Below are positions 12,101 to 63,949 of a stretch of 64,000 bases of DNA, piece by piece. Source of the DNA: Ylistrum balloti (Eukaryota); assembly GCF_031769215.1 (NCBI RefSeq), contig NW_026781940.1, forward strand, positions 1-64,000, in the 5' to 3' direction. Positions within the stretch are counted from its first letter, which is position 1. Each line of letters begins with the position of its first letter. A program made the translations under genes and the position numbers. The notes below the pieces were generated by a model that was not told where the DNA came from, searched no databases, and saw nothing but the letters and a program-made list of their open reading frames with translations.

Positions 12101-15100
12101 GAAGTCTGGAGCAATATGAAATTCTGAAGAAATACATCAAACAAATTTTCAAAAGGTTATCAGTTCCCAACCAAAGAAGCCATTTTCAGTTTCTTTCTCG
12201 ATCCATCTGTATATGTACATATGTCATCACTCTTGTGGTACGATTCCTTAAGAGACAACAAGTTTCAGTTTCCGAATCCTCAGCATTCTAGCTGCTTTGT
12301 TCCATACACGACTTTTATCAAACCTCACACACTCAGAAACAAGCATAATATCTTGAGACAAATTTGATTTTAGAGTTGTTTGATCAAGATCAACGTCACG
12401 GTTACTTTTATTAGAAAATTGTTGTCAACATTGTAGGGCTTCATTCCACACGTACAAACAACTACAATATTGTGGAGTTTCAAAATTGTTTTGTCAAGGT
12501 CATGTTCAAGTTCACTGTTGCTGTTTTTAAGGAAATCATTGTCAGCACTCTAGCTGCTTCATTCCTTAATCAAACTTCAAATACATGTAAAGGACCATAA
12601 GGTATGGAATGAGTTGGAGTTTCCTGGTTGTATAGTCACTGTCAACTCAGTAGGTACTGTTTATAGAAAATACTCGACAAATGGTAGCTTCCAGATCAAC
12701 AATTTATATTGAATTGGAATTAAACATACCTTTTGCCTTCCTTTCCCCAAAGTAACACCAAACAACACCATTATTACCATGTAATAGTTTGTAGAGGCCA
12801 ATAGGGGACACCTATTGCTTTAACAACACTTTGTATTTTTGTTTTGCCTAGCACACCAAACGTTTGTAAGATTCAAAACAACATTGATAAAGTAAAAATG
12901 ATGTGCTTAAAAAAAATTTCATAAAGATGAAAAATATCTATATTTCATTCTTCAGCCACCTGCCTGCTTACCTGGTTGGAGCATTTGCTAAGCGACTAGC
13001 CAGAATTTCACTAACAGCTCCTCCTTCTGGTCTGACGGTGTCCATACCGTTCATCTATAACCTCATCCACAGACACCCAAACTGTCGTGTATTATTACAT
13101 CGCACGGAGGGACCATCAGGTAAGGTCTGATGGAACTTAGGACTACTTCTGTTTGTTTGGCAACAATCTTTGTGATGGGTCCAACATACATGTTTATAAA
13201 GAATAATAATTATTGAAACCTCTGTAATAAGACGACACCTGATTTATAGGGATGGTTTCTTTGTTGGCCTCAGGAGCTTAAAATCAAATAAGGAACTGAA
13301 TTTATGGTTTTATGAAGCATGGTCAGTTCCCACTTTTTAATTAAGTTAAAACTGTTTAGCATACAAGGAAACTCATCTGAGACATTATCATACTCAACAG
13401 ACACCTAGCTGCTGGTGACAATAATTATGCCTGTGCCTGTTGATAAGCCCACACATATTTAATTCAGTCTGTAGAAAAGCCAGCACTTTCAGATTGATGT
13501 AATGTGTTGACTTTCTGGGCCCGATTATAGATTATATGGCAACATACTCATTCATTTCTCTTACATGGTGAATACTCACCTGTTTGTTATGAATGTGATT
13601 CCAAGCTTATAGTTGAACATGTTATCTTCATACAAAGTGTTTCCTGAATCTGGAAAGCTTTTTCATCTCCATGTGGAAATGAACAAAATTAGGAATTTCA
13701 TCAGAGAGATTAGCCTTTTTGTCAAAGCATAAACAACACCTGTTATGACAAGATGTGCGTTTTTCTATTTATTTGTGTTTTCAAACAAAAACATGTTTTT
13801 AACTGAAATTTTTATTTTTGTGTTATTTACTACCTTTTGTTTCACCCTTAACACATTTTGTTTGACCACGTTTTCCTATGGTAGTTTAAAATAGTTTAGA
13901 CGAAATCATCCTGGCTCTCAAGAGGATGTGAAATATCTGGCGTTGATTCAGCAGAAATTAATATAATCGCTCTTGTTTACATAAATATTTCAGAAATTTC
14001 TACTCTACACGGACACTACGTAGAAATGAAAATAAACTTAATGACTGACTTGAATTTAGTTGTGGCTTTCACTCTTCAGAGGTCATTTCAAGTTTCATAG
14101 GATATGTTAATAAGGATATTCGACCGAGAACGTTTGCCATGTAGAATCAAGTTGTAATGATAAACATGTGTATGAAAGTTTTCCTGTAAACATTAAAGGT
14201 TTAATGTTTTAGAAATACACGAGGACCCCTATGATCCAAATGAACCTGATCCTACAAAGTGTCACGCTATGGACAGCTGTCTTTGGGAACTTAAGGTATG
14301 ATATGGAACTTAATCTAAGGTATAAAACAGATATTCTGTCTTAAAATTTATGTAAAAACTTCAAATTTGTTTTGAAAGTAAAAATGAAAGATGTCTTTGG
14401 GAACTTAAGGTATGATATGGAACTAAATCTAAGGTAAAAAAACTTATATTCTGTCTTAAATATTGTGTTAAAAACTACACATTTGTTTTGAAAGTAAAAA
14501 TGAAAGATGTTTTTTGCAGTCTCAGATTTTAGAAAATATAATTTCGCATTGGTTGGTAAATCATTGTGTTCGTTTGATAATGAACTACGTTTCAAGATTT
14601 ACTCAAGAATATTTTAAAAATCTGGTTATTTTGATGCCTATTTGATAAATATTGATGTTTATTTTTTTGTCCATGTCATTTCATAGAGGTGATAGGGAGA
14701 GATGAAATGTTACCATGTCTGCTTCAGCTCTATCTCAAATTGGTGACCTCTGTCTGGTAACTTCATTTTCTAGGTATGAGGAAGATAATGTCTGTTTAGT
14801 TTGGACTCCCAGTTCCAAGCTCACCATTATTACTATTTATAGAATTTGTTCTAATTTACATATGTATTTGTTAGAGCCTACAGTCTCACTATCATCCAGA
14901 CGTGGCCAGGAGCGCACAGAGGATTGATGGCGAAATCCAAACCACAGAAACTGACCTCTCGGACCTCTTTGAAACCTCATATGATGATGTAAGTAAAGTT
15001 ATTGAATTTATAGGCTTAAAAAATACATTGCAAAATATTGTAATTCACTTATCTTCTCTGCATTTGTTTTTGTGTATAAAATATGCAAAATTAAGGAACG

Positions 15101-18850: not shown

Positions 18851-18873
18851 GATACTTTATTTTATGTCAAATG

Positions 18874-21800
18874 TAAAGTAAACATCACAAAAACTGAAAA
18901 GAGAATGTAAACATCACAAAACAAAAAGGGACACACATGAAAAGTAAACATCACCACTGAAAACAGTAATAATCACAAAAAAAAGTAAATTACAACACAA
19001 AAACACTGAAAAGTAAAATAAACATCACAAAACACTGAAAACGAAAATTAAACATGGAAAAAATAAAGTAAACATCACAAAAATGAAAACGTAAAATAAA
19101 ACACACTGAAAAGTAAATAAACATCACAAAACAAAAATAACACTGAAAACGTAAATAAAGTAAACATGAAACAATTCAAAACACTGAAAATAAAGTAAAC
19201 ACACAAAACATGAAAACGTGAATAAAGTAAACATCACAAAACACTGAAAACGTAAAATAAACATCACAAAACACTGAAAACGTAAAATAAACATCACAAA
19301 ACACTGAAAACGTCAAATAAACATCACAAAACACTGAAAACGTGAAATAAAGTAAACATCACAAAACACTGAAAACGTCAAATAAAGTAAACATCACAAA
19401 ACACTGAAAACGTAAAATAAAGTAAACATCACAAAACACTGAAAACGTAAAATAAAGTAAACATCACAAAACACTGAAAACGTAAAATAAAGTAAACATC
19501 ACAAAACACTGAAAACGTGAAATAAACATCACAAAACACTGAAAACGTGAAATAAACATCACAAAACACTGAAAACGTAAAATAAAGTAAACACCACAAA
19601 ACACTAAAAACGTAAAATAAACATCACAAAACACTGAAAACGTAAAATAAACATCACAAAACACTGAAAACGTAAAATAAAGTAAACATCACAAAACACT
19701 GAAAACGTGAAATAAACATCACAAAACACTGAAAACGTGAAATAAACATCACAAAAACACTGAAAACGTAAAATAAACATCACAAAACACTGAAAACGTG
19801 AAATAAAGTAAACACAAAAACACTGAAAACGTGAAAAAAAGTAATCATCACAAAACACTGAAAACGTAAAATAAAGTAAACATCACAAAACACTGAAACC
19901 GCAAAATAAAGTAAACATCACAAAACACTGAAAACGTAAAATAAAGTAAACATCACAAAACACTGAAAACGTAAAATAAAGTAAACATCACAAAACACTG
20001 AAAACGTAAAATAAAGTAAACATCACAAAACACTGAAAACGTAAAATAAAGTAAACATCACAAAGTACTGAAAACGTAAAATAAAGTAAACATCACAAAA
20101 CACTGAAAACGTAAAATAAAGTAAACATCACAAAACACTGAAAACGTAAAATAAAGTAAACATCACAAAACACTGAAAACGTAAAATAAAGTAAACATCA
20201 CAAAACACTGAAAAACAAATAAAGTAAACATCACAAAACACTGAAAACGTAAAATAAAGTAAACATCACAAAGTACTGAAAACGTAAAATAAAGTAAACA
20301 TCACAAAACACTGAAAACGTAAAGTAAACATCACAAAACACTGAAAACGTAAAATAAAGTAAACATCACAAAACACTGAAAACGTAAAATAAAGTAAACA
20401 TCACAAAACACTGAAAACGTAAAATAAAGTAAACATCACAAAACACTGAAAACGTAAAATAAAGTAAACATCACAAAACACTGAAAACGTAAAATAAAGT
20501 AAACATCACAAAACACTGAAAACGTAAAATAAAGTAAACATCACAAAACACTGAAAACGTAAAATAAAGTAAACATCACAAAACACTGAAAACGTAAAAT
20601 AAACATCACAAAACACTGAAAACGTAAAATAAAGTAAACATCACAAAACACTGAAAACGTCAAATAAAGTAAACATCACTGAAAACGTAAAATGAAGTAA
20701 ACATCACAAAACACTGAAAACGTAAAATAAAGTAAACATCACAAAACACTGAAAACGTAAAATAAAGTAAACATCACAAAACACTGAAAACGTAAATAAA
20801 GTAAACATCACAAAACACTGAAAACGTAAAATAAAGTAAACATCACAAAACACTGAAAACGTAAAATAAAGTAAACATCACAAAACACTGAAAACGTAAA
20901 ATAAAGTAAACATCACAAAACACTGAAAACGTAAAATAAAGTAAACATCACTGAAAACATAAAATAAAGTAAACATCACAAAACACTGAAAACGTAAAAT
21001 AAAGTAAACATCACAAAACACTGAAAACGTAAAATAAAGTAAACATCACAAAACACTGAAAACGTGAAATAAAGTAAACATCACAAAACACTGAAAACGT
21101 AAAATAAAGTAAACATCACAAAACACTGAAAACGTAAAATAAAGTAAACATCACAAAACACTGAAAACGTAAAATAAAGTAAACATCACAAAACACTGAA
21201 AACGTAAAATAAAGTAAACATCACAAAACACTGAAAACGTAAAATAAAGTAAACATCACAAAACACTGAAAACGTAAAATAAAGTAAACATCACAAAACA
21301 CTGAAAACGTAAAATAAAGTAAACATCACAAAACACTGAAAACGTAAAATAAAGTAAACATCACAAAACACTGAAAACGTGAAATAAAGTAAACATCACA
21401 AAAACACTGAAAACACAAAATAAAGTAAACATCACAAAACACTGAAAACGTAAAATAAAGTAAACATCACAAAACACTGAAAACGTAAAATAAAGTAAAC
21501 ATCACAAAACACTGAAAACGTAAAATAAAGTAAACATCACAAAACACTGAAAACACAAAATAAACATCACAAACACTGAAAACATAAAATAAAGTAAACA
21601 TCACAAAACACTGAAAACGTAAAATAAAGTAAACATCACAAAACACTAAAACGTAAAATAAAGTAAACATCACAAAACACTGAAAACGTAAAATAAAGTA
21701 AACATCACAAAACACTGAAAACGTAAAATAAAGTAAACATCACAAAACACTGAAAACGTAAAATAAAGTAAACATCACAAAACACTGAAAACGTGAAATA

Positions 21801-23874
21801 AAGTAAACATCACAAAACACTGAAAACGTAAAATAAAGTAAACATCACAAAACACTGAAAAAGTCAAATAAAGTAAACATCACAAAACACTGAAAACGTA
21901 AAATAAACATCACAAAAACATTTAAAACGTAAAATAAAGTAAACATCACAAAACACTGAAAACGTAAAATAAAGTAAACATCACAAAACACTGAAAACAC
22001 AAAATAAAGTAAACATCACAAAACACTGAAAACATAAAATAAAGTAAACATCACAAAAACATTGAAAACCTCAAATAAATTAAACATCACAAAGTACTGA
22101 AAATGTGACATAAAGTAAACATCACAAAACACTGAAAACGTAAAATAAAGTAAACATCACAAAACACTGAAAACGTAAAATAAAGTAAACATCACAAAAC
22201 ACTGAAAAAGTCAAATAAAGTAAACATCACAAAACACTGAAAACGTAAACATCACAAAACACTGAAAAAGTCAAATAAAGTAAACATCACAAAACACTGA
22301 AAACGTAAAATAAAGTAAACATCACAAAACACTGAAAACACAAAATAAAGTAAACATCACAAAACACTGAAAACGTGAAATAAAGTAAACATCACAAAAA
22401 CACTGAAAACGTGAAATAAAGTAAACATCACAAAACACTGAAAACGTAAAATAAAGTAAACATCACAAAACACTGAAAACGTAAAATAAAGTAAACATCA
22501 CAAAACACTGAAAACACAAAATAAAAGTAAACATCACAAAACACTGAAAACGTAAAATAAAGTAAACATCACAAAACACTAAAACGTAAAATAAAGTAAA
22601 CATCACAACATGAAAACATAAAGTAAACATCACAAAACACTGAAAAAGTCAAATAAAGTAAACATCACAAAACACCGAAAACGTAAAATAAACATCACAA
22701 AACACTGAAAACGTAAAATAAAGTAAACATCACAAAACACTGAAAACACAAAATAAAGTAATCATCACAAAACACTGAAAACGTAAAATAAACACCACAA
22801 AACACTGAAAACGTAAAATGAAGTAAACATCACAAAACACTGAAAACACAAAATAAAGTAAACATCACAAAACACTGAAAACACAAAATAAAGTAAACAT
22901 CACAAAAACATTTAAAACGTAAAATAAAGTAAACATCACAAAAACATTTAAAACGTAAAATAAAGTAAACATCACAAAACACTGAAAACGTGAAATAAAC
23001 ATCACAAAAACATTTAAAACGTAAAATAAAGTAAACATCACAAAACACTGAAAACGTAAAATAAAGTAAACATCACAAAACACTGAAAAAGTCAAATAAA
23101 GTAAACATCACAAAACACTGAAAACGTCAAATAAAGTAAACATCACAAAACACTGAAAACGTGAAATAAAGTAAACATCACAAAACACTGAAAACACAAA
23201 ATAAAAGTAAACATCACAAAACACTGAAAACGTAAAATGAAGTAAACATCACAAAACACTGAAAACACAAAATAAAGTAAACATCACAAAACACTGAAAA
23301 CACAAAATAAAGTAAACATCACAAAAACATTTAAAACGTAAAATAAAGTAAACATCACAAAAACATTTAAAACGTAAAATAAAGTAAACATTACATAAGC
23401 TGGAGATGGATTAATATAAGTAAACATCAACAATTGTTAAAACACATTGTAAAGAGAAAAAATGAAATGAAATAAAGTTTACAAGAAACACTGAAAACGT
23501 GACATAAGGTAAACATCACAAAACGCTGAAAACGTAAAATAAAGTAAACATCACAAAACGCTGAAAACGTCAAATAAAGTAAACGTCACAAAACACTGAA
23601 AACACAAAATAAAGTAAACATCACAAAACACTGAAAACGTGAAATAAAGTAAACATCACAAAACACTGAAACCGCAAAATAAAAGTAAACATCACAAAAC
23701 ACTGAAAACGTAAAATAAAGTAAACATCACAAAACACTGAAAACGTCAAATAAAGTAAACATCACAAAACGCTGAAAACACAAAATAAAGTAAACATCAC
23801 AAAACACTGAAAACGTCAAATAAAGTAAACATCACAAAACACTGAAAACGTAAAATAAAAGTAAACGTCACAAA
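18874..23874 (+). repeat. 5-kb satellite array, 35-bp consensus AAACATCACAAAACACTGAAAACGTAAAATAAAGT (30- and 25-bp variants), roughly 140 units
   Basis: Directly visible; degenerate left edge (to ~19230), homogeneous core, ~95-bp interruption at ~23392-23485. Confidence 0.97.
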
Positions 23875-24541: not shown

Positions 24542-27500
24542 ATGGCAGCCTCCATGTGCAACGTGAGTGTTCTTCGTCGACAGTTGTTTTCATCGGTACA
24601 AAAGAAATCATGTTGTCATTATCATCTTGTAGGAAGACTTTGTTCAAGTATAGCAGAAAGAGACGACATTGATCATAAAGACAAAGAAGCAACATTCCAG
24701 TCCCGTGTGGCAGACGAAGACGACTATTTTGGTGTGTCGATTCCAGAAGACAGGTGGTCTGTACCTCGATCATCATCTCTCTCTGAAAAGGAATTATTCG
24801 AAAAATATCAGGCAGGTAGATTAAGCGAAAATGAAACATACAACATGCAATTTGTAAACTTGCGGTTTGGAAGGATGCGTTTCGATAACGTGACAGATTT
24901 AAAACATCAAAAAGATGCGAGGATGAAATTTCATGACTTAAATCAAGTTGGTGTGAAAAAAGATATTTTGAATACTATGGCACGTATTAACGACGGAAGA
25001 GAAACATCGTATTCGGAAGAAAGTTATTATGCTTCTCTTTTAGATCAGTTCAAAAGTGATTCGAAATATCGTGAGCCTTCTGTGGCGCAAGATTTAGTTT
25101 CAAAGAGATCTAGATCAAGGACACGTAAAGCAGGGAATGGAAAAGTTGATTCCCTTCAGGTGAGTAAATCAGGAGCGATGGACAATGTTGAAACTGATCA
25201 GGATGTGGAAGGAAAGACATCACCATATCATACTGCTACACCTACTACGGTTGAATATGGTGATGAAAAATTGACAGTTTCAAATGAAGCTAACGATGAA
25301 AGTTCTGATAGAAATAATGGTGATTTGAACTTTATAGATCAACAGTATTTTCAAGGAGATCTTGTTTCAAATGAGGAAATTAGCACCAAAGTTAAAGATA
25401 GTGATAGCTGTGATTTGAACTTCATAGATCAACAGTATTTTCAACAAGATACAGTATTAACAAAAGCTGAAAAATCAGCCGGGTTATTAAACTTTGAATC
25501 GTCACAAGGAAATCATCCTAATGAAGTTATACCAGAACTAGAACCAGATTTCTTGTTTTCTCATGCAAAGAAAGAAATATCTTCGGAAAAGAACAGAACA
25601 TTTTCCGATCAAGAAATTATATCTTCTAGTGTAGAAACAGTTTCTCATACTTATCCGAAAGATCATACAGAAAAGCTGCATCCAACTTCAAAGTCAAAAA
25701 CGATGAAAACCAAAGAAAACCCCAGAGCAAAGCCTGAGAAGATAAAAACTGAAAATTTTGACAGTGAAGTATTATCTTCCTACCAAGAGACTGCAATTTC
25801 AAACCCCGATCAGGTATCTGAGAGTGCAACTCCAAAGATTCAAAACTTGGAAACTGAAGGAGGCAGTACAAAAACAAGATCTAGCGATATTAATTTTATT
25901 GATCAACAGTTCTTTGGCGAGCACTTATCTGATGATGATTTGAAAACATCCATAAATAGCGAATTTTGGAATGATCAAGAATCAGATTTGAACTTTATAG
26001 ATGAAAAATATTTCAAGGAAGCTGAATCTACTCCTGAAAGGAAACCAATTGATTTGCTGACTCCAGACCATGAAGGGCCTGAAAATAAAGCGTCTGTAAG
26101 AGATGTAAAACATTCTGGTAAAGGAAAAAAATCTAAAAAAAGGGAAAAAGAACTTAATAGAACTGACATGGATAAGCGCAGTGATCGTCTTTTTCAATTT
26201 CAAGTTATGGATGACCTTGAAAGAGATAGCTTAATAAAAAGAAAACGTGCACTGTCCACAGGGAAGGAGAATGAGACTGAAAATTTGTCGAGCTCAGCTT
26301 ATGGCACAGTGCAGAAGCTACGAGGCAGTCAAGGAATTAATCTAGAAGGTAAACTTTTTTTATCATCTGTTCAATCTTTCAGTGGTAATTGGTTTTCAAG
26401 TATATTTTGAAATGATTAAAAGTAATTACATTTTTTGAAAAAAAAAAAGAAAAAAAAAAGCATGCAAATAAAATTGTATAAAAGTCTGGGGAAAAATACA
26501 TTTATCATAGAATCTTACCAGACTTTATTGATAAACTTTTTATTTGTTGTCTTTTCTGATGTATAGAGTTAATGTTTAATTAATAGATATTAATTAATGT
26601 CTTAATAAGTAACTAAGATGATGAAGTCTTCACAAAATTAAGACACTGTAAGATCATTATAGCAAGGTCAAAATGTATATTAAGTGCATGTGTAGTAATA
26701 TATGCATGACAGGCACATCTAGACCTGCACAAACCCTCAAGGCTAATGATGTTCCCTTATCTTCATTTCTTTGAAAAATGTGTCATTCAAGTTAAAAATT
26801 TATAGCATTTTCATCAAGTTTTTTTGAATTTCTTATCAATTAAAAAATCTCGAAAGTTAATCTGATGTGAAAAAAGAAATCATCTTTTTAGCACAATGTT
26901 ATTAGATTTTAGGCTATTCAGATCACCTTTCGTCCATGGCCCATGGTCTGTCATCTGTCGGTAAACAATTCTTGTTATCGCTTCTCAAGAATCGTCGAAC
27001 CATGCACCTCCAGTCTCCATCTTAGGCTGAATAGGAAAACGATCTTGGTATCAGGTATTTCAAAATGGAAGCAAAATACATTTAATTATACATTTATGAT
27101 TTATCATATTTTGATGATATCCTTTTTTTCAGGAGGGGCCCCTCTTCGTGACAGCAAAGGAATGAAGGTTATGAAAACTGTAGTTCCTCAACTCCATAAA
27201 ATGACAACTGTTGAGATTGTAAATATGATCACCAGACACATCTTGTATGACAGTGGTAAGTTGGAAATCAAACCACAAATGGTCAACGGACACAAGAATC
27301 ACTGCAGTTATTAGTGGGAAGTTCCAATTTAAACCTAACTATCAGGCACATAAAAAAATTATTTTAGGTAATGTAAGGCCAAAATTCTATTCTGTCCAAG
27401 TGTCCTTTTGTTAAAATATTTCCAAATGATCACAGAGTTCAGAAATATTTGTTATCTGCATTTGATACTAAGATGATAGGAAATTTTTCAAAGCACTGGC

Positions 27501-30500
27501 TAGGAGCAAGCAGACCTCAGAAATTCAGTTACAGTTTGAGGAAAAAAAAAAAATATATATACAGTTGTATATATATATATATGATATTAAGTAAGGGCAA
27601 TGTCAGTTGACTTAGATTGATGAGCCTGGACTGAGAGCCTGTTGTGATACATCTATCCTTTACTAAGCTCAGGGAGGTAATACATTGCTTCTTACTCAAA
27701 GTCATAGGGTGGGCTTATTACAGGACAGCAAGTTAACATTACTGTACAGCAATACATGTAAATATTAGAGTTATTGTCTTATAAATGTGGTATATCCTCC
27801 ATAACAGCTCTCCGTTAATATAAATCTAAAGCTCCTCATATTTTAAACAACGTACATAAGTGCATATGAATGATGTTGAAACACAAAACATTTGATAAAA
27901 TTGTGTAAATATTTTTCTGTTGATCTGTTTACAACAATTCAATTATTTCTGTTTTGTTTATATGTAGATGACATTGTGGCCATATATAAACCCTATGGAC
28001 TGCCTTCCCATGGTAAGTTTGAGAGTAAAATGTCAAAGTCAGATGCATCCTGTTTGAATCAAAATTTTCCATGACAAATTGTAAAATTAACAAAACAACC
28101 TTTTCAATAAAAGAAAACTCGTGTTTATTTTCTTATGGTACTTTTTTATATTTCTCAAGTGGAGAAATAAGTTATTGCTCCGTCTGAATATTTTCCTTTA
28201 GGAGGCCCAGGTGTAGCCATAAGTGTTGCACAACTTCAAGAGGAAATTGGTCAAAAACTACCCAACAAAGCGGACAGTCTATACATGGTACACAGACTGG
28301 ACAAGGACACCACTGGGGTAATGCTTCTTGCCAGGTAGGTAATCTAAATATGGAAGATTGGGGTAACAACAGCATACAAGCTTTAACTTTGGTAACCAAG
28401 GTTTGATTCCCTAATTAGGCATGAAAAGGCATAGTTTTCCCCCTTCACAACCACATGGGTTTTTCCTAGGTTTTTAAATATCTGACTTTCACTTTCTTTT
28501 TCACAGTAAGACCCTTGACATGCTTTTATTTGGGCCAACAAGAGTGAGAAACATGAATAGCTGAATTTTTTTAATTTTTTAATTATTGTGTGATAGAAAA
28601 AGTTTTTAAGGTCAAAGAAAGGCTAATGAACTATTTTTGGGAGAAAATGTTTAATATTTTCAGTGAAGTTTATGCTATGTAGCTGACTTAATTGAAGATT
28701 TGTGGCCTGGAAACTATTTTTGAAGACTTTCGTCATCATTTGTCATAGATGTCTACCAAAGAGAGTTTTGGTCAGACACATTTTGGAATTTCCTTTGGCA
28801 ATGAGTAGTGAAATGTGAATTGCAGCAAATGTTGACACCATCTAGAAAGCATGACAACAGATAACAAAAATTTATCTTTGTACTGATGATGAAGTTAACA
28901 CAACGGCAGTTATACAGCGTTTAATGATTTTAGAGACAGGTTTTTCACAATAATATTCTAGAAGTTAACATAATTATTTTCTCCTGTCATCATACGAATT
29001 TCAGATCAGACATTTATCAAAACTGATTATCATACTTTATTAGAACTCAGGAAATGGCAGCAAAATTATCTCAAGCCTTCCGGGAACAGAAAGTGGTAAA
29101 AAAGTACTGGGCCATCACTAAAGGGATTCCTAATCCAACAGAGGGTGAGTCCATTGTTTATAGAACAGGGTCATCATTATAGGGATTGCTAATCCAACAG
29201 AGGGTGAGTCCATTGTTATAGAACTGGGTCATCATTATAGGGATTCCTAATCCAACAGACGGTGAGTCCATTGTTATAGAACAGGGTCATCATTATAGGG
29301 ATTCCTAGTCCATCAGAGGGTGAGTCCATTGTTTATAGAACCAAATCATCATTACAGGGATTCCTAATCCAACAGAAGGTGAGTCCATTGTTATAGAACC
29401 AAACCATCACTATAGGGATTCCTAATTCAACAGGAGGTGAGTCCATTGTTATAGAACAGGGCCATCACTAAAGGGATTCCTAATCCAACAGAGGGTGAGT
29501 CCATTGTTATAGAACCAAACCATCATTATAGGGGTTCCTAACCCAACAGAAGGTGAGTCCATTGTTTATAGAACAGGGTCATCACTAAAGGGATTCCTAA
29601 TCCAACAGAAGGTGAGTCCATTGTTATAGAACAGGGCCATCACTAAAGGGATTCCTAATCCAACAGAGGGTGAGTCCATTGTTATAGAACCAAACCATCA
29701 TTATAGGGGTTCCTAACCCAACAGAAGGTGAGTCCATTGTTTATAGAACAGGGTCATCACTAAAGGGATTCCTAATCCAACAGAGGGTGAGTCCATTGTT
29801 ATAGAACCAAACCATCATTATAGGGGTTCCTAACCCAACAGAGGGTGAGTCCATTGTTTATAGAACCAGACAGATATTCCTGGTCCCACTGGAGGTGGTT
29901 TGCGGTTAAAAGCATTTTTTTAAAAAATCCTATGTTTACCTTATACACAATGTTGACCTTTGACATGACCATGACCTTTTGACATGACCTTGACATTTTA
30001 CATGACCTTGTCTTTATACTTAATCTTGTTTATAATGTTGTCTTTTTTCTGTCTTCAGGTATCATTGATATCCCGATGATGGAAGGAACTGTTGACGGCA
30101 AGAGCAGGGTCAGTAGTCTAAACATTATCAAGGGAAATTACTCTATTTGACCATTCAATTAACTGAACTTGCCAGAAATCTTACGATTTATAAGATTTTT
30201 GCCATCAATGAGGGTTTCCTAATTAATAAGGCTTAGCTATATTGTAAAATGTTTATTTTCATTCTAGAGTACATGTACCACCAAATTTTTATATATTTAT
30301 AAAAAAAAATTTTTGTTGATTGTTTGTTGTTTATACATTGTACTGAAGTGATACTGTATAGTTGATAATATTTGCGGGGATTTGATTTCGGTATATCTAC
30401 GATCAATCAAAATAGTGTAAAATTAGATACCCAGAAAATATTTTTACGGTGGATGGAAAATCTCAGAAAATCGCAGTAATACCTGTATACATGAACATCA

Positions 30501-41616: not shown

Positions 41617-44600
41617 ATGGAGAGTCCCTGTGGAATTTTAATCATATTTGGACTTTTTCTTCCGGCGTTTGGACAATGTAAGTATATATTGATCGTTTGT
41701 ACGCAAATAAGTTAAAGCACTTCAAAATACATAAAAAGGGTGGGTGGAAGAAATCAATAGACATGTTAGTAATATTTCAATATTTGATGTTTATCTATTT
41801 ATTTATTTATTTTCTAATTTATTTTACATCTCTACTGACGTCTGTAAATGTGTCTGTTTTTTATTTTTATTTATTTATTTGAATATTTATTTTCGAGAAA
41901 GACATAAAATAAATGAAATCTCATAAATACAAGAAAACCTCGATATAATGTCCGTCATAATTCGAAGTCTTTCCTTTCTCCTTTCTGCGTTTCTTTATTT
42001 TTATTGTAAATTCATTCATGAATTCATTCATGGTCGCGCAATATTACACTATATGTTGATACTAACTTTACGTTTTGCTTGGAAACTGATGGGGATGTAA
42101 CGAGATTTAATAAATAAAGATTTCGAGGGCAAATCGAACAGAGGCAGCCATTTTGTTACGCCATTATTAATTCATGACGTAACGTCATTGTCTATATAAT
42201 GACATCACAATCGATTTGTTTCTGATTGGCACAGACAATGAAAACACTTCAGGGTCCTGGCGTAATGTTCTGAATAAAGGGGCTTTTGTCTGTGTTTTTA
42301 CAATAGTAAGAGAGGGAAAATAAACAAAAGAATGAAAAATAAAAGTAACATGGTTTTTATTCGTATTGTTCAATATTTTTTCAGTTATGCCTTCGAATTT
42401 TGCATGTTCGTCCCCGAATTCAACAACTTTTGTTTTTACCTGGGTCCGACCGAACGACCCTACAAGCCAAGTGCAGGGCTACCACCTTACCATCTCCCGG
42501 TCAGATGGTCTACAGGTCGACAATTTCCCGGTAAGTATCATCTACCACTCAGACGGTCTACAAGAGGGCAATTTTCCAGTAAGTATCATTTTCCGGTCAG
42601 AAGGTGAACAATTTCCCTGTAAGTATCATCTTCCGGTCAGACGGTCTACAGGTGAACAATTTCCCTGTAAGTATCATCTTCCGGTCAGAAGGTCTTCAGG
42701 TGAACAATTTCCCAGTAAGTATCATCTTCCGGTCAGACGGTCTTCAGGTGAACAATTTCCCAGTAAGTATCATCTTCCGGTCAGACGGTCTTCAGGTGAA
42801 CAATTTCCCAGTAAGTATCATCTTCCGGTCAGACGGTCTTCAGGTGAACAATTTCCCAGTAAGTATCATCTTCCGGTCAGAAGGTCTTCAGGTGAACAAT
42901 TACCCTGTAAGTATCATCTTCCGGTCAGAAGGTCTTCAGGTGAACAATTACCCTGTAGGTATCATCTTCCGGTCAGAAGGTCTACAGGTGAACAATTACC
43001 CTGTAGGTATCATCTTCCGGTCAGAAGGTCTACAGGTGAACAATTACCCTGTAGGTATCATCTTCCGGTCAGAAGGTCTACAGGTGAACAATTTCCCAGT
43101 AAGTATAAAAAAAAACAACTTATCGTCAAAATACAAGATGGCTGCATGTCCGTTTTTTCGAACAGTTATGAAATTGAACAAACATATGCATAATAAGGGA
43201 TTTTAACACAATTAATGTTTTGAGCATGTTGGCAGATATTTTATACAATAATTTTTTTCGGTATGTTTCTATGTGGCAGCTGAATACACAGAAGTAAGTG
43301 CGACACGTGTACCTTAAAGTAATAGTGGAATGGCATATACATGTAACACTCATTAACATGATAATTTTAAGAAAATAACGCATAATTGAATTTTTTCAGC
43401 AAATGGTGATCCCTGGTTACTTGGTACAGACGTACACTGTGTATGGTGTTGGGAAGTTCGCTGTTTACACGGCTAACTTACACTGTTATACCGCCAGCGG
43501 AAACGAGGCCGATGTCACAATTGACTGTAAATCTATGGCAGACGGTAAGATGTGTTTGTTTTTTCGATATATTTCGATATATATCTCCTTAAAATGACAT
43601 TAATGTCACTTTGAATGTAAACGCACAGAACTTGCAGACGATATTTTACAGCAGATCCCAGCCTCACCAATAAGCTTATTTTTCACGCTATTAACAGAAG
43701 CTTCGATTTGAGACCGATTTCATGATAACGTGCGTCGGAGATACTTCCTGCGATGGTTGCATTTAACATGTCAAAATTAGATTTATCAATCATATCACGC
43801 CACATTAAGGTTTCTATTTAATATCTAGTTGTTTACAGGAACGGTCTTCCAATGTCTCCATCGTTTAATTTAAGACCAAAGTCGCATTTGAAAGATGACA
43901 TTTTAAATAAATTAATTCCATATAAGGTGTTAATAATTTGGTGCATTAGTTTCGGACCCCTTAAGAATTGTACCTCCAAAGCTACGCCATGTAAACGAAT
44001 TGCCACCAAACAAATACTTAAATGAATTGAATTTTGCTCATATTATAATATTTATTTTAAAAAAAAAACTGACCGGTGAAAAACAAAGGGTTAGATTCAA
44101 ATGAGCCTCATTTCTTGGTAAACTTCATTTTATAACAGCAACTATTTAAATGAAGTTATTTTTGCATCTGTCGGTCAACAACTCGCTAGTTAATTCAAAT
44201 AAGAAATAAGTCACCAATTATAATGATTTTTAAATCACCGTTTTTCAATGAAAGAAGCGCATGTTCGGACTTCTGAGAAAAATTGCATTGAGATGTGGCT
44301 CATTGATAGACGGCAACAACATACTGGCGTTCAAATATGGATTGGTAGACTATGTTTTTTTTTCTTTCTGGATGCGTGACATGTTTGTACAACCAAAACC
44401 ATCCTGGTGTGAGGTCACGCTGGTCAATAGTTCACGTAATACAGCTGGACAAAATGACTGGTCCAAAATACATAACTTTCCAGAACCGATATCGATACGG
44501 TATTATGGGTAGTAAAAGTTATAATTTTTGAGAGAACAGAAGAAAACACTTTGATGATATAACTGATAAAAAAGCAAAGTTGGTATCTTGACTTTCGTGG

Positions 44601-54706: not shown

Positions 54707-54748
<42 letters not shown>

Positions 54749-57700
54749 CTTCACCAGCTAAAATCAATTAAATTTAAGGAAAGCATATGATTATTTTGCA
54801 ATCTCTAAATGTCACCAACAACTAGTAGTTTGATGTTTACTGTCATGCTTGATGATTTAGAGTTACCACAATGACATATCTAAAAGAGAAATCAATTAAT
54901 TGATAAGTAACAATACGTACATTGTGGCATAATCCCTTGGTTACACAGGCTCCTGAAACAATCAATAATTTTCACTTTATCTTAGAATCTGCTTATATTT
55001 ATATTTATATTAATATAGATTTGTGAATTCTGTAATTCAAAACCTAAAACAAGCTGTCACCATCAGGAAACTTAAAAACCAAAAATCCTAACAAACAAAC
55101 AGCTGTTTTCGAAAGTTTTAAACTTTAAACATTTAGTGCTGATGTAGATGACCTCAATATGAATAATAAAAGTACAGGGTTAATAGGGGAAGTTTAACAA
55201 GAGATCCCAGAGGGTTCTTGTCGCCCACCATTGTTTGATCTTTATACAGTAGTTCTCAAGAAATAGCAATAACAAACTTTCAAAGTTAAAGTACAAGATG
55301 GCTGCCTGGAAGCCATTTTTGTTTTATCATAACCAAAATCAAATGGCACAACTAGGGACCAAGGGAAATCTACATACGCAATTTAAGAAAGATCCATCGA
55401 GAACTTCTCAAGAAATAGCAATAACAAAAATTGTTAATGGATGGACAGACCATGGATGCAGAGCGATTTGAATAGCCCACCCTCAACAGATGGCGGGCTA
55501 AAAATGCATAGGTTTCATGAAATCTGACATTGCTGTTAGTTAGAAAAAAAAAAAATACCCTAAGTCACATTAAAATATTTTGGTTTCTAATAGGTCAGTT
55601 TTGCTTAATTTTTTTTTTTTTTAATTTCATTTCATTCAAAGTTTGTTTCTAATGATATCTATTGTACATTGATATAGTATAATTGCATTTGATATGTCTC
55701 ATTAACTTACAATCAGGTACAATGACTCACTATTCAGCTCTATAAATGAACCAATCGTATTACATTGTAAAGGGAGATAAATCTTTTAGCCAGCAACTAC
55801 AGATGTAGACCAATACTTACAGGAGAGCAGAATAAACAGCTTTATGGTTACTGTGGCCACTAACTCCACTGGAGTCAAATGTGATAACCTGTTAACAAAC
55901 ATGTAGGTGTATTAAAGAAATCAGTTAGAGCTCGTATATCTGGTTATCAGATCTCCAGATATGATCGTATGATTGGTTTGGTAAAAATAAGACAAGAAAT
56001 TTTTGCAATATGTCTTTTTTTGTTTGTTTAATAGATTATCATCTTGCCAACAACCATGGTCAACTGGAGGCAGGGACTTCTTGTAGCAGGTGGCTATGAC
56101 ACTGAACAACATAAGGAAGGCCCATCACATGACTTGCATGCTACCCGAAGAAAATGGTGTAAAGTGTCTTGTCCAATGACACAAACACATCACAGGACAA
56201 ATCATGTTTTCAGTTTCCTGAGAAATACAAATAGTTCCCTTACTGAGAGCCCAATGCTCTACCCACTGACCTTACTTGTTTCATATACCTACATAACTTA
56301 CATTATCAAATGCTCCAGGAATGATTATCAGTATACTGCAGTCAGATCACATGTATTGTTATCATAGAAACTATTGAGAATGATTCTAGATTCAGTTCTA
56401 GGAAATTGTTATTCTTCACAGCTTTGATTGTCCTAATATTTTCATTCTACATTCAATTTTGTAGTTTAATTGTAAATAGTTACATTAAAGCTGTGCCCTT
56501 TCATTTTTCATTAAATTAAGATTACCACTCAATAAAGATTACTGCTTAAGTAAGATTACCACTTAAATATGATTACCACTAAATTATGATTATTGATAAA
56601 GTAAGATTTCCACTGAAATAAGTTTACCAATAAATTAAAATTACTGATACAGTAAAATTACCAATAAAATATGATTGCCACTCAATTAAGATTGCCACTA
56701 AAATAAGATCTCATCCAAGTTATGCTAGTTTACAGTACCATAAATCTGATGTGATATACTTACAGCATTTGGCTGTATTTTGTAGATGGTGGAGCGTATT
56801 CTGTCACTCACAACTTCTTCATCCCAAGATACGGAGGGATCATCAGGATAAAGGCTTAAAAATGACATAAAATTTCTAAATTATTCACTACAAAATCATC
56901 AACTTACTTATACACCTCTGTGCATTGTGTATACTTGTTTGACAGGCTAACAAATGATTTTTTTTTCATAATCATAGTTCAATTTTCAGTACAAATGATT
57001 TTGCAAAATACAATAACGAAATGTGATCTGTCTTACTTCTTACACTTGTATTTGTATCAAATTTGTGTTTCTCCAGACATTGACAAGTAAATCTAAAGTC
57101 AAAGGACGTCTTAATTTACACTACAATTATATCATAATTAATTTTAAGACTAATTAATTGATTATTGATACGTTACATTTATATTGTAAATATGTGCCTC
57201 ATTACCTAATGTGGGTATTATGTACATAAGTTGAGTCAAATTTCTACGACCAGAATGTTAGCCATATTCTGTCTGGGCTCAGATCATTAACTTGAAAATA
57301 TCTTTTATCTGGTAAGACATACATACATTTGTATACAGTATGAAGATGTAAATAAAGAAAAAAATCATTGCTGCTGGTTGTTTAACTAGCTTTTTTACCT
57401 GATGTGACGATAAGATTGTTATTTTTCATCACTGACCAGCAGTACCTTCATATTTTTGTTGCGTTTTAGCAAAAACAAAATACATATTACACTGTATGAA
57501 TACTAACAGTGTTAATTGACAATGATATTCATTCTGATGTAAATTTGAAGTAATTGAGATATTAAACAGTTACAAAAAAACTGAAGATTTTAGATGATAG
57601 TTGGTTATGGATTTTTAACCATTTCCTAGCATTAGTAATGGTAGTGTCAATCTAAATACTGATGAGTCAAAATGAACTTACTAACATGTAAACAGCTGTG

Positions 57701-60700
57701 ATCTCGGTGATGTCACAACATAAAACCACGATCTTACTAACATGTAAACAGCTGTGATCTCGGTGATGTCACAACATAAAACCACGATCTTACTAACATG
57801 TCTACAGCTGTGATCTCAGTGATGTCGTAACATAAAACCACGATCTTACTAACATGTATACAGCTGTGATCTCGGTGATGTCACAACATAAAACCACGAT
57901 CTTACTAACATGTAAACAGCTGTGATCTCGGTGATGTCACAACATAAAACCACGATCTTACTAACATGTAAACAGCTGTGATCTCGGTGATGTCACAACA
58001 TAAAACCACGATCTTACTAACATGTCTACAGCTGTGATCTCAGTGATGTCGTAACATAAAACCACGATCTTACTAACATGTATACAGCTGTGATCTCGGT
58101 GATGTCACAACATAAAACCACGATCTTACTAACATGTATACAGCTGTGATCTCGGTGATGTCACAACATAAAACCATGAACTTACTAACATGTCTACAGC
58201 TGTGATCTCGGTGATGTCACAACATAAAACCACGATCTTACTAACATGTAAACAGCTGTGATCTTGGTGATGTCACAACATAAAACCACGATCTTACTAA
58301 CATGTCTACAGCTGTGATCTCTGTGATGTCACAACATAAAACCACGATCTTACTAACATGTATACAGCTGTGATCTCCATGATGTCACAACATAAAACCA
58401 CGATCTTACTAACATGTCTACAGCTGTGATCTCGGTGATGTCACAACATAAAACCACGATCTTACTAACATGTCTACAGCTGTGATCTCCATGATGTCAC
58501 AACATAAAACCACGATCTTACTAACATGTCTACAGCTGTGATCTCGGTGATGTCACAACATAAAACCACGATCTTACTAACATGTCTACAGCTGTGATCT
58601 GGGTGATGGTAGCCATGATTCTTCTAGGTTATTTTTAAAAGAGGACATAATAACATTGTTTTATATGAAAGAAATAAACTTAAGTCGTGTGAATGAGAAA
58701 TTTCAGTATTTCAATTAAAAAAAAAAAAAAAAAAAACAGAAATTATCATTAAAATTAAATTTAACAAATTTCCAAACAATTTTGAAAATTTACACAAAAA
58801 TTGCACTTCAGAGAAATAATCTAATAAACAATACATTTAGGTTTCATCAAAACTATAGTGCATTGTTAAGATCATTTTGCAAACAAATATTTTTCTTGTA
58901 ATGTAACTTGTTGTCCATCAGCTGAAAAATATTTAAGTTAATTTAGAACTTTATATAAAAATAAAGTGTATTATGGGAATTTTTCATGATTAAGACTTGG
59001 AAAATCAACGAAGGTATAAAGTGTTAAGTTCACTTTACCATATAATTATCATGCTGGGCCCAGCTATTGTATCTCAGCAGATAAGATATTGGACTGGAAG
59101 CTACTGATAATACTGAAATAGGAAATCATATTGTATACATTGCTGATATTTTTTCTTTTCCTGAAGCTCTTTGTATTATAATAAACTTTATTTATTTTAC
59201 AACAATTACGAACCAAGTTTTTCCAACTTATATTAATCACTCTTGCTGGCTCAGATGGAAATGCACAAGGGATCTTAGTGTGGGAGGAAACCGGAGTGCC
59301 CAGGGAAAACCCACGTGGTCGGGCAGGTGACCCCATACCTTTTCACATCAATTCCGGGAATCGAACCCCAGACGGCTAGGTGAAAGGCGAGTGTGTTACC
59401 ACTGCACCACCCAGACCACCCCATTCTTTGTGTAATGTTGATATAGTCTATAATGTATGTCATTGTAGGTTTAACTAACCTGTTGTCCTCTATTTTGACC
59501 TGCTGTCTACCAACTCCCAACAGTTCACAGCTTCGTAAAAGTTCCCCTTTACGGCGTTCACCCAATCCATAGTAATTTCCTGCAACACAATAACTGAGAC
59601 CTTATATATATATATATATCATGTTTTACTTTTGTAAATATTTGGTTATGGTTCAAATAGTACAAAGAAGGAAACAAACAAACAACAATATACAGACTAC
59701 AACATGGTTCATATTATTTGCAGAAATACTTTTTTCAACTCAAGATTCTCTATCTGTTTTCCAAGTAAAATTGTGATGATGCAGTTGTAAATATCATCCA
59801 TTGAATGAATTAATTTTCATCTCAGGGCTCTCGATCTCCCAGATTTGGGGCCGATATTCGGCCCCATTCCCAATGCAAAATAGTATCTTTTTTCCCAATT
59901 TAGACCCCAAGTTTTCCCAATGCTAAGGAAAATACCACTATTTTTCCAAATTCTAAGGGCCCTCGGTCCCAGTCCCAAAATGGTGTGTGAGAGCCCTGCA
60001 TCTTCAATATCATTTCAATATAGGACTATTTTCAATTATTTCAAACTGATATTCAGATTATTAACAAATAATGAACTAAAAAAGTATATATATATATATA
60101 TAAATGTATCTATATATATATATATAAACGTTATGATAAAGAACTGTCAGATATTGATGTTTCTCATATTAATAGATACCAAGAAGAACTCAGTAAATCT
60201 TGCATGACTTTTTCCTGGAAAGTTCTGAACACCATTTCTAAAATATTGATCAATAAAAGATAAGATAGATTTCTATCCTATAAATAGGAAACTATCGAAA
60301 CATTCCTCAAAAATGGAGTGAGTCTCACATCATGAATCTTGGACTCAAATATCCAAAATGTTATGGACTAGTTATATGAATAAGTTGATAAATAATATGC
60401 AAAATGCAATATAATTTTCATTTTTTCATACTTTCTGTGTGAAGTATCATATTTATGATTTAATCATTTGTGTATATTTATATATTCATCAGAAAAAAAA
60501 TCTGCAATGTATATGCGTTAAAAGAAGGGAGGGAACTCCAGTCGAGTATAAGATCTCCAACAAGTTGTGTTTTATTGCACTGTAATGAAATGAAATATAA
60601 AATGATAAAAAATGAAAATGAAGATTCATTTTATATTCTTAAGATCTGTAGAGATTTATAGCATTAATATCGGAACACAAACGATCGATAAGCCAATATA

Positions 60701-61305
60701 GCCCCCCCCCCCCCGCCATTTCCTCCCTTTCAATACTAGTAGGAGAAAAAACTACTGCATGGATGCATGGAATATGCGGGAGAGTTTCAGCTAGAGAAGG
60801 TAAGGCTATTGATGTTACATGGGAAATTAAATCCAACGTCAGAAGGATTCGAACCATAACCTGGGGTAGTATGGTCTGTATCGTGTCAGATCAGCTCCAA
60901 ACATGGATATATCCTATGAGGACACGCCCACACAACATTGGTCATAATAGTGAGGTCTAATACTTCAGATTAATAACTGACCTTATTACGAACCGATAAT
61001 GTGTAGACGAAATTATTATATATACCTGTTGTAAGACACAATATGCTGACCAAATGTCCTTCCCGAACAAGAGACAACACAACCGGAGCCAAAAACATGC
61101 ATTCGTCATCTGGGTGAGCGGTGATCAAAAGGATTTTTTGATGTACAGATGCAGGTATTGTTCTATAATTGAAGCTTCGTATACTTCCGAAGACTAGATA
61201 TACCACTACCGCTAAGATCAAATATGGATATACAACGTAAGTTGTTATTTCTTCCTGGTGTGTTGATAAGAACTCCACAAAGTCGGCTGTCAAGTTTCCC
61301 GCCAT
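53249..61305 (-). CDS. PIGL: N-acetylglucosaminyl-phosphatidylinositol de-N-acetylase, 272 aa, 7 exons
   Basis: Exons 61305-61026, 59579-59480, 56854-56764, 55888-55821, 54952-54921, 54508-54378, 53365-53249; GT-AG, phases consistent, 819 nt. N-terminal TM anchor, [23 protein letters not shown]...[27 protein letters not shown] and HRSQL.WFR.LY..FSRYM are diagnostic. Confidence 0.95.
53652..53755. repeat. Short inverted repeat / mini-MITE with 28-bp arms
   Basis: acgtcaaaagtctcctagagtctccagt (53652-53679) versus actgaaggctttaggagacttttgacgt (53728-53755); lies among HINE fragments. Confidence 0.6.
55196..55504 (-). mobile_element. HINE-like element, inverted orientation
   Basis: Minus strand begins tttttagcccgcc..gggtgggcta (5' hairpin) and ends with a caagaaccc/gggatctcttg hairpin + tt; core shared with 4380-4680. 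Confidence 0.65.
56035..56190 (+). pseudogene. Kelch-repeat-like exon remnant, antisense within PIGL intron 3
   Basis: Strong acceptor (tttttttgtttgtttaatag) followed by [43 protein letters not shown]; the GG...W spacing fits a Kelch blade. Confidence 0.4.
56518..56710 (+). repeat. Degenerate 17-bp minisatellite (~11 copies, AAGATTACCACTNAAAT) with a 3-unit higher-order period
   Basis: Units are countable at 17-bp spacing; every third unit has the variant TA(C/T)TG.TA.AGT. Confidence 0.75.
57672..58608 (-). repeat. Minisatellite, 17 copies of a 56-bp unit, each carrying TTA|GTAAG in the PIGL sense orientation
   Basis: CTTAC occurs at 57677 and every 56 bp to 58573; plus-strand unit cttactaacatgt(a/c)(a/t)acagctgtgatctcggtgatgtcacaacataaaaccacgat. 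Confidence 0.95.
59175..59422 (-). mobile_element. tRNA-derived SINE with V-type central domain
   Basis: Minus strand: A box TGGTGCAGTGG, B box GGTTCGATTCC, core GTGGGTTTTCCCTGGGCACTCCGGTTTCCTCCCAC, A-rich tail aaataaataaag. Confidence 0.75.
59823..59998 (-). mobile_element. Second copy of the CAGGGCTCTC-TIR MITE with 5-bp TSD
   Basis: cagggctctc at 59823, gagagccctg ending 59998, flanked by CATCT on both sides; reverse complement is similar to 7844-8007. Confidence 0.85.
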
Positions 61306-61659
61306 CTTGGAATTTGAACTATTTCTGAAAGTCGTAGATTATGTTATAAAGTATCATTTTTAGATTGACTGATCAAATATTGTCGATACTACAAGATGTA
61401 TATATAATTGGACAATTATTTTAAGAGTTACTATATAGTCCCAAATTCTCGATGAATAATTTTCTTTGCGACATATATATATCCATTAATGGCAGTCGCG
61501 CATGCCCAAAGCATGTAAACAGTGTTGCTAGGGACAAACATGGTGGAAAATGTGTTACTGAAAGTCTTCCTATGGTTATTTTGAGGAATTTAAAGGGATA
61601 TAGGTGTATATAGAGACAATCTAGAGTCCTTATTCATCTGTGTTTTAGCGGAAACAAAT
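61306..61659. promoter_or_regulatory. Bidirectional promoter PIGL/CFAP251 with forkhead, RFX and NRF1-like sites
   Basis: 354 bp between divergent ATGs; GCGCATGC 61498-61505; GTAAACA 61515-61521; TGTTGCTAGG (RFX half-site, reverse CCTAGCAACA) 61523-61532; YY1-type AAGATGGCGG overlaps the PIGL ATG. Confidence 0.65.
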
Positions 61660-63949
61660 ATGGCTGACGAGGAGGGTCAAAGTGCTCCTGTAACACAAGA
61701 AGAAGAACAAAAACAAGATGATGTTGTTGCAGAGCCAGTGAAGGAGGGAGAGGGCGAAACGCAAGAACAAGTAGAAACTGAAACTAAAGTAGAAGCCCAA
61801 AAGGATGAAGACACAGAGAAAGATAATACTGGAGCACCGACTGAACAAGCTGATACAACTGAGGAAACACCTCAAGATGTAAATGAAAATGCTGGAGGTG
61901 CCCCAGAAGGCGAAAGTAAGGAAGACGGACAGCAAGAAAGTACTTCAGCACCACCAGCAGAACCCACAGCGCCAGACACTACAGAAGGGCCTGGGGAGGA
62001 GGCACAGCAACAACAAGAAGTATCGGTAGAGGGTGAAGCTAAAACTGACCCAGCAGAGAAAGAAGAGGATAATACACAAGAAACAGTGCAAGAAGGAGAG
62101 AATTTGGTACCAGTATTCACAACAGATACATCAATGGATGTAGAACAACCAAAACCAAGTGAAGTAAGTGAACAAGCACCTACTGAGGTTCCTACAGAGG
62201 CCCCAACCACTGAGGCTCCCCAAGAGGCACCAACCTCTGAAGCTCCCACAGAGGCCCCACCCACTGAGCCCCCCACAGAGGCCCCACCCACTGAGGCTCC
62301 AAAAGAGCCCACACAGACAGAAATATCTCAACAACAAAGTGAAACAGCTGGTCCAACGGAGGCAACTGTCCAAAGTCCACGCACTGTTACCCGTGAAAAA
62401 ACACTGTCTCCTCCGCCACCAACTGAAACCATGGGCACAATGAGCACACAACAGGAACCACCTCCTGAAACAAATGTGATTCCAGATGCTCCGAAAATTC
62501 CAGTTGTTGAGAGGGAACCTTCACAGATTGAAGGCACAATGTCAAATACAGCACTGGTATATATTTATGGTTTTATAATAGAATACTTTTAATAACTTCT
62601 ATACACAATTTAGAATAGTATTTTGTAGTTGGTTTCAGGAGGTTACATCAGGCATGAATGAAATATAAATAAGTGTTTATTGCCAGATTTTGCAGGCTAA
62701 ATGTAGTGCTAAAATTGTCACCTATACTTGATCAATGAAAGTTAAATGTAAAATTGAATTGAGTGAATGGTAACTACAAATAGTTTGTCTCAACATTATC
62801 TGCTGCAAAGTTTGCAGTCAAGATTTATTAAATCAAATTAACTTTTTTCTGTGTGTGTCTTTCAGAATGTTGTGTGGTCATTTGGACTGAACAGGAATAT
62901 TCCAGTGAAGAACCTCACTGACAATAACAGGAAGCTGATCATGTATGCCTGTGCACATGTTGGTGTTTTATATGACTACGAGGCTAACCGTCAACATATT
63001 CTACAGGGTCATGTGAGTCTCATTGCGTTGTAGCTTACATGTATAGTAAAGTTATGTTAATCTATGTGAGAGAATTACTAAGAAATGTTATATAGTATGA
63101 TATTTAGTATATATAACAAAATTTTCTTATGCAAACTAATTGATAATCTTATTTTCGATTCAGGCAAATCCTTTGACATGTACATGCATTAGCGAGGATA
63201 AGCGTTGGCTGGCAACTGGAGACAAAGGCAGGGACAGTATGGTCATCATCTGGGACACTTACACAGGGTCAGTATAACAAACCTGAGTCACAGGGTCAGT
63301 ATAACAAACCTGAGACACAGGGTCAGTATAACATACCTGGGACACAGGGTCAGTATAACATACCTGGGACACAGGGTCAGTATAACATACTTGGGTCATA
63401 GGGTCAGTAAAACAATCTGGGTCACAGGGTCAGTATAACATACCTGGGTCACTGAGTCAGTAAAACAAACCTGGGTCACGGGGTCAGTAAAACAATCTTG
63501 GTCACAGGGTCAGTATAACATACCTGGGTCACTGAGTCAGTAAAACAAACCTGGGTCACGGGGTCAGTATAGCAGACCTTGGCCACAGGGTCAGTATAGC
63601 AGACCTTGGTCACAGGGTCAGTGTAACAAACCTGGGTCACAGGGTCAGTATAGCAGACCTGGGTCACGGGGTCAGTATAACAGACCTGGAACCTTAATGA
63701 AACTACACATGTATAGGGTAAATACTTCTTATGATGTCAATTTCAGTGATATTTTATGTTCATGATTATGGTTCCTTTTAATTTCATTCCATTTTTTATT
63801 TGAATTAGAATATTTGTATATGATTTTTTAATTTACACAGGGTACCTGTACAAACAATTTTCGATGATGACCAGGAAGGTGGTGTTGTTGCAATGGCAAT
63901 GACCCCTGATGCTCGTTACCTAGCAACACTTAGTTCTGCAAAGAAGCAG
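61660..63949 (+). CDS. CFAP251: Cilia- and flagella-associated protein 251 (WDR66), 5' part; runs off the window
   Basis: Exons 61660-62556, 62866-63012, 63164-63267, 63841-63949, phases consistent. Acidic/TEAP-rich N-terminus followed by [51 protein letters not shown] and [13 protein letters not shown], matching WDR66 as I recall it. Confidence 0.9.
63250..63689 (+). repeat. Minisatellite, 16 copies of a 26-27-bp unit made of CFAP251 exon 3 end, GTCAGT donor and intron start
   Basis: Unit cacagg|gtcagtataaca(a/t)acctggg(t/a); real donor at 63268, GTCAGT copies to 63671. Confidence 0.95.

Follow-up and report, generated by a model that had tools for sequence, protein, structure and literature searches.

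Four exon ends in a 64,000-nucleotide stretch of the saucer scallop Ylistrum balloti (contig NW_026781940.1, positions 1 to 64,000, here called the window) are each followed by a tandem array whose repeat unit joins the end of the exon, the GT donor and the start of the intron, with the real exon-intron junction as the first copy. The genes concerned are NOC4L, an RPUSD4-like gene, an FN3-domain gene and a CFAP251-like WD40 gene (Table 1). These arrays are probably exon-junction minisatellites of the type called mirages in amphioxus, in which an ordinary tandem duplication over a junction was tolerated, then homogenized, and proved long-lasting. In each case the first unit begins within the exon, between about 6 and 40 nt before the donor, and the remaining copies are all intronic. 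A sequence-only reading of the same DNA, made without database searches, had placed four arrays on donors and had assigned the same layout to a fifth array in PIGL. The four are upheld by a rebuild of the coding sequence, by conservation and by Pfam matches, and extend only into the intron, whereas the PIGL array is of another kind.

The RPUSD4 donor was fixed by exact reconstruction of the coding sequence. The longest exon of the window, a 602-amino acid open frame, is a 100% match to the Ylistrum balloti protein P0001 (896 amino acids; Pfam PseudoU_synth_2), and the P0001 gene is located on contig JAUZWB010000814.1, with coordinates identical to those of the window. At the NOC4L, FN3 and CFAP251 junctions, translated conservation with Pecten or Argopecten stops exactly at the junction and none is seen past it. 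The Pfam matches to CBF, fn3, WD40 and PseudoU_synth_2 each reach the respective exon end.

The array units of the four genes show no relatedness to one another, and the arrays are therefore not one mobile element, as the sequence-only reading had also concluded. Copies within arrays diverge by 2 to 25%, and the RPUSD4 array contains higher-order periods of 117 and 175 bp. The NOC4L duplicate, in which positions 14272-14392 and 14386-14508 are about 90% identical when aligned, scores below the reporting level of Tandem Repeats Finder (TRF) and was detected by eye and by alignment.

The GT dinucleotide is kept in all downstream copies of RPUSD4 (12/12), FN3 (12/12) and CFAP251 (15/15) and in the single further copy of NOC4L, and the cores of the downstream donors are the same, or nearly the same, as the core of the real donor. 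Together the four arrays hold about 40 intact decoy donors, which agrees with the banks of decoy U1 sites that the sequence-only reading had described. Computed use of a decoy in RPUSD4 leads to a frameshift or a stop at every copy, each decoy in CFAP251 is followed by an in-frame TAA, and use of the NOC4L decoy brings an immediate stop; the second copy in FN3 is the only decoy that keeps the frame (+48 nt). Annotated proteins in four species all use the first-copy donor, and this choice yields the conserved protein. What results is presumably a bank of intact 5′ splice sites that are normally silent.

The 56-bp array in PIGL is an ordinary intronic minisatellite. Mapping of the Argopecten PIGL protein (P0007) onto the window places the end of exon 2 near 59478 and the start of exon 3 at 56853, and the array starts about 870 nt into intron 2, where no supported exon adjoins it. 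The highest donor score on its sense strand is 4.9, compared with about 8-13 for the real anchored donors, and it does not align to the exon 2 junction. Exon mapping, the weak donor score and the missing alignment rule it out as a donor array.

Donor excess and orthologous junctions

In the window, 4/10 non-coding arrays are anchored on a donor, where 0.24-0.35 would be expected (P about 5e-5 to 2e-4, with about 35-50 donors in the window). This test is post hoc because the window was picked for this pattern, and an independent sample was provided by the orthologous loci of Pecten maximus (L002), Argopecten irradians (L003 and L005) and Mizuhopecten yessoensis (L004). In these three other scallops, anchored arrays account for four of the 20 intronic arrays, versus 0.95 expected (P = 0.01), and for units of 120 bp or less the expectation is 0.40 (P = 5e-4).

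Five exact gene models were also used for an echo scan, in which a 24-nt probe over each junction was searched in its own intron. Five of the 38 donors had echoes there, with 12-52 matches each, and none of the 38 acceptors had copies; the corresponding counts for the Pecten, Argopecten and Mizuhopecten subset are 4/30 and 0/30. The frequency is thus about 13% of donors, for two genes in four species. Outside their own intron the junction probes found essentially no matches (one in one locus). No acceptor-anchored array is present in the window, and the absence of arrays from verified acceptors, as originally noticed, holds for the window and for the 38 exactly mapped acceptors. The donor enrichment that the sequence-only reading had estimated for the window likewise recurs in the orthologous genes, and the donor excess over chance is real.

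All five anchored donors of the exact models have the form GT[AG]AGT, compared with 14/33 of the other donors, and the NOC4L and CFAP251 donors do not. A strong donor motif was sought on either strand of 25 non-anchored intronic arrays in these genes and was found in none of them, so that a donor motif alone neither makes nor favors arrays. The count of 0/25 for a sense-strand donor motif also rules out selection for U1 sites, or motif-driven expansion, in the non-anchored intronic arrays. Anchored and non-anchored arrays are two distinct classes.

Comparison of orthologous introns, which had been proposed as a check, reveals arrays at two of the same donors in other genera. Pecten carries a 30 bp x 26 array at the very same donor of RPUSD4 exon 5, and FN3 exon 2 is followed by about six 52-bp copies in Pecten and by a decayed run of at least ten 50-58-bp copies in Argopecten. 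No array is found at the RPUSD4 exon 5 donor in Argopecten or Mizuhopecten, or at the FN3 exon 2 donor in Mizuhopecten; the Ylistrum NOC4L duplicate has no counterpart in Pecten, and the Ylistrum CFAP251 array has none at the Argopecten donor. Further donors are affected in the other species. The RPUSD4 exon 2 donor of Mizuhopecten has an array of 51-bp units (45 exon nucleotides followed by GTAAGT), which is broken by an assembly gap, and the Argopecten PIGL gene has arrays at the donors of exon 4 (38 bp x 53) and exon 5 (54 bp x 17). Two arrays in NOC4L introns were rejected as junction copies, the 62-bp array of Mizuhopecten in which alignment shows no similarity to the junction, and the 117-bp array of Pecten, which starts 360 nt past the donor.

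Unit length and copy number vary between genera, and so do the unit borders at shared donors. The RPUSD4 unit combines 36 nt of exon with 22 nt of intron in Ylistrum versus 17+13 in Pecten (21+9 with another placement of the left border), and the FN3 unit is 40+8 in Ylistrum versus 35+17 in Pecten. Such differences could stem from a second origin, or an inherited array could have undergone an internal deletion that then spread among its copies. Substitutions at the exon end that are specific to one species are common to the array copies of that species. Half of the Ylistrum RPUSD4 copies keep AAG/GT (the slash marks the junction), which is the state of the exon in Pecten, Argopecten and Mizuhopecten, while the Ylistrum exon now reads AGG/GT; since the copies retain the ancestral form, the array predates the exon change. 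Some of the arrays are, to judge from these comparisons, old or recurring at the same site, with turnover.

The Mizuhopecten RPUSD4 exon 2 array (L004 12638-12980 and 16557-17616, split by the gap of Ns) has TT in place of GT in 5/6 copies nearest the real donor, and the distal copies have GGTAAGT intact in 13/15 cases. Loss of GT near the real donor could reflect selection against close competitors, or it could just be the way that unit variants are distributed. At the Argopecten FN3 exon 2 junction (L003 32276) the authentic donor is GTTAGT, and several of the decayed downstream copies retain the stronger GTAAGT.

Origin and retention of the arrays

In the explanation that we favor, replication slippage or unequal exchange would have given rise to a short tandem duplication that happened to cover 6-40 nt of exon end, the GT donor and 8-96 nt of the adjoining intron start. 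The duplication would be tolerated, as it leaves the exon intact and splicing presumably continues at the most upstream donor, as in an array of the human F7 gene (see below); with that donor in use, any further copies would lie in the intron and be spliced out. The arrays then appear to expand, contract and homogenize by unequal crossing-over or gene conversion, because higher-order periods are seen together with species-specific unit variants and copy numbers, and some of them seem to have survived across scallop genera.

Several points weigh against this explanation. Under passive duplication combined with a filter, only some 3% of the arrays that are born locally are predicted to cover a donor, compared with the 4/10 in the window and the 4/20 in the orthologues (P 1e-2 to 5e-5), so that an extra bias in birth or persistence is needed, and an added bias in birth or retention is likely. 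Pre-existing microhomology at the unit borders, sought in outgroups that are free of the array, was found for only one of eight arrays, and the introns for the remaining comparisons are too diverged. The supportive case is RPUSD4 exon 2, with its array in Mizuhopecten, where Ylistrum has TGGAGAT at exon position -45 and TGGAAAT at intron position +7; the related 7-mers TTGAAAT and TGGAAAT occur at this border site in Pecten and Argopecten, and only the Ylistrum match stands out (7/10 matches, equaled at 2% of control positions). Finally, the silence of the decoys is something that we infer, and in several of them the fit to the consensus equals or exceeds that of the real donor. Such consensus-matching sites could compete in F7 (PMC1557585).

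One alternative, which we consider unlikely though conceivable, is that exon-intron junctions in pectinid genomes genuinely act as hot spots where minisatellites are born or retained, by a process linked to transcription, splicing or exon chromatin, and that the arrays are very long-lived and exchange sequence with the exon end. If this were the case, the arrays would both record old exon states and feed changes into coding sequence.

A narrower proposal, raised in the sequence-only reading, is that a mutational process coupled to splicing or transcription (pausing of RNA polymerase II, R-loops, or repair at 5′ splice sites) gives rise to duplications specifically at donors. It would account for donor-anchored arrays being several-fold above chance and for the contrast between donors and acceptors in the echo scan, and it would fit both the GT[AG]AGT form of the five exact-model donors and the presence of arrays with differing unit borders at the same two donors in two or three genera. 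However, an internal deletion in an inherited array can also give differing borders, and the donors of NOC4L and CFAP251 are not consensus. This proposal is in our judgment distinctly doubtful. The other option considered in that reading, a selective filter, fits the observations better than splicing-coupled mutation, but alone it fails to explain the several-fold excess at junctions.

It is very improbable that the arrays were selected as banks of binding sites for the U1 small nuclear ribonucleoprotein, whether to strengthen splicing at the upstream donor or to prevent premature cleavage and polyadenylation where introns are AT-rich. The intact GT in nearly all copies and the persistence of arrays across genera speak for such selection, but young, homogenized arrays are expected to keep GT anyway. 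The donor core is slightly less variable than other parts of the unit, and the difference is not significant (p about 0.11), which leaves selection on the decoy donor core without statistical backing. GT has moreover been lost from five of the six Mizuhopecten copies closest to the real donor, the whole Argopecten FN3 array is in decay, and the orthologous donors work without arrays in other species.

An assembly artefact, or a mobile element carrying a satellite, can hardly be the explanation: tandem repeats are error-prone in assemblies and one Mizuhopecten array has a gap of Ns, but the copies differ from one another and show higher-order periods, assemblies of other species, which were produced independently, show arrays at the same donors (so that the artefact envisaged in the sequence-only reading is not borne out), and each unit holds exon sequence of its own gene, with no common unit family and essentially no probe matches beyond the intron, which rules out a transposon-borne satellite.

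The findings that arrays are in several-fold excess at exon borders, that they occupy the same donors in several genera and that some copies preserve older exon states all bear on how minisatellites are born and retained. On the practical side, junction arrays in mollusc genomes can cause errors in gene prediction and in short-read assembly.

Gene map and other repeats

Table 1. Genes, array-bearing exons and intronic arrays of the window (a slash marks the exon-intron junction)
Feature	Position	Strand	Description
NOC4L exon, 3′ end seeds the duplicate	14209..14295	+	Donor AAG/GTATGA after 14295; tblastx conservation with Pecten L002 2228-2315; Pfam CBF
RPUSD4 coding exon 5 (exon 6 in the sequence-only reading)	29044..29144	+	Donor AGG/GTGAGT after 29144; exact coding sequence rebuild from P0001; Pfam PseudoU_synth_2
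FN3 gene exon 2	42385..42530	+	Donor CCG/GTAAGT after 42530; conserved in Pecten, Argopecten and Mizuhopecten; Pfam fn3
CFAP251-like exon 3	63164..63267	+	Donor AGG/GTCAGT after 63267; 87% amino acid identity with Argopecten up to the junction; Pfam WD40
NOC4L duplicate	14279..14508	+	2 copies of ~114 bp; 17-18 nt exon end, donor and ~96 nt intron; 1 decoy donor
RPUSD4 array	29109..29868 (TRF 29109-29866)	+	13 x 58-59 bp; unit of 36 nt exon end and 22 nt intron start; 12 decoy GTGAGT donors
FN3 array	42491..43106	+	TRF 48 bp x 13; unit of 40 nt exon end and GTAAGTAT; 12 decoy donors
CFAP251 array	63262..63689	+	TRF 27 bp x 15.9 (16 copies); unit of ~6 nt exon end and 21 nt intron; 15 decoy GTCAGT donors
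PIGL minisatellite	57677..58608	-	TRF 56 bp x 16.6; inside intron 2, not exon-anchored
NOC4L gene	ends 15554	+	Gene map of the window
RPUSD4-like gene	24542-35580	+	Gene map of the window
FN3-domain gene	starts 41617	+	Gene map of the window
PIGL gene	61305 down to ~53250	-	Mapped by homology
CFAP251-like WD40 gene	starts 61660	+	Head to head with PIGL

The RPUSD4-like protein has an N-terminal extension of 600 amino acids in a single exon (24542-26348), which shows 37-44% identity between scallop genera, compared with 70-97% in the catalytic exons. Near the 3′ end of the RPUSD4 intron that carries the array, a short TGACCTTTGACATGACC-like repeat is present in Ylistrum (29953-30010) and Argopecten (L003 14560-14760), and it may represent either a conserved element of the intron or a piece of a transposon common to both. 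The acidic, low-complexity exon 1 of the CFAP251-like gene contains an in-frame 27-bp coding repeat that is rich in PTEAP (62182-62307). In or beside the short spacer between PIGL and this gene lies a non-coding block of about 75 bp that is conserved between Ylistrum (61474-61550) and Argopecten (L005 9747-9823), and which is probably a shared promoter element.

Between NOC4L and RPUSD4 there is a 4.9-kb intergenic A-rich satellite (18870-23874; 35 bp x about 139) with extreme AT and GC skew and a 5′ edge that decays gradually; inspection of its start found no recognizable exon or donor. A further family, with tandem units of about 157 or 321 bp that adjoin a (CGTC)n microsatellite, recurs in various introns and intergenic sites of three scallop species (L002 17400-19502; L003 16232-17671; L004 22847-23150 and 26857-28678; L005 28111-30752), and it looks like a mobile element with an internal satellite.

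Comparison with known junction repeats

The sequence-only reading did not recall this phenomenon as a described system, but comparable repeats are on record. Tandem repeats over an exon-intron boundary were named mirages in the amphioxus Adh3 gene (Canestro et al. 2002, as cited in PMC3087553 and PMC3902484), and further mirages have since been reported from the globin, TnC and PGBD5 genes of amphioxus, where they affect 5′ as well as 3′ borders and give no aberrant mRNA (PMC3087553, PMC3902484). The scallop arrays resemble mirages in that the unit spans the boundary with its splice signal, the real exon copy is the outermost one, and splicing as annotated is normal. Mirage units measure 10-160 bp, and the scallop units of 27, 48, 58 and 114 bp fall within minisatellite size. 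Mirages undergo concerted evolution within arrays and their copy number varies between haplotypes or species; the scallop observations that bear on this are the species-specific variants common to exon and copies, the higher-order periods, and the unit lengths and copy numbers that are specific to a genus. The scallop arrays differ from mirages in belonging to another phylum (Mollusca, Pectinidae), in affecting orthologous donors in several genera, and in being confined to donors, in the window and among the 38 junctions, whereas both borders are affected in amphioxus.

A second comparator is intron 7 of human F7, which contains a 37-bp variable number tandem repeat, the first unit of which covers the donor of exon 7. 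Splicing always selects the farthest upstream of the 5-9 identical sites, and pseudo-sites compete only if they match the consensus perfectly (PMC1557585). In F7 and in the scallop arrays alike, the first unit lies over the donor and is followed by pseudo-donors with a potentially functional 5′ splice site. The choice of the upstream donor has been demonstrated experimentally in F7 and is deduced in scallops, and F7 is treated as a single locus (PMC1557585), compared with four loci in 64 kb of scallop DNA. With many identical 5′ splice sites placed right after the working one, the scallop arrays offer a natural test bed for how the spliceosome chooses among equals, which has until now been investigated mostly at one locus, human F7.

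The Rogers model, in which an intron is gained by tandem duplication across AGGT (discussed in PMC3087553), also involves a tandem duplication that includes a splice signal. Unlike in that model, the scallop duplications have created no new intron, because relatives without the arrays have the same intron positions. Our search of the literature for junction repeats in scallops, bivalves or other molluscs found nothing, and it found no genome-wide study. The scallop arrays belong to a known kind of junction repeat, and what is new in them is the phylum; they are notable for their frequency and for the occurrence of arrays at orthologous donors.

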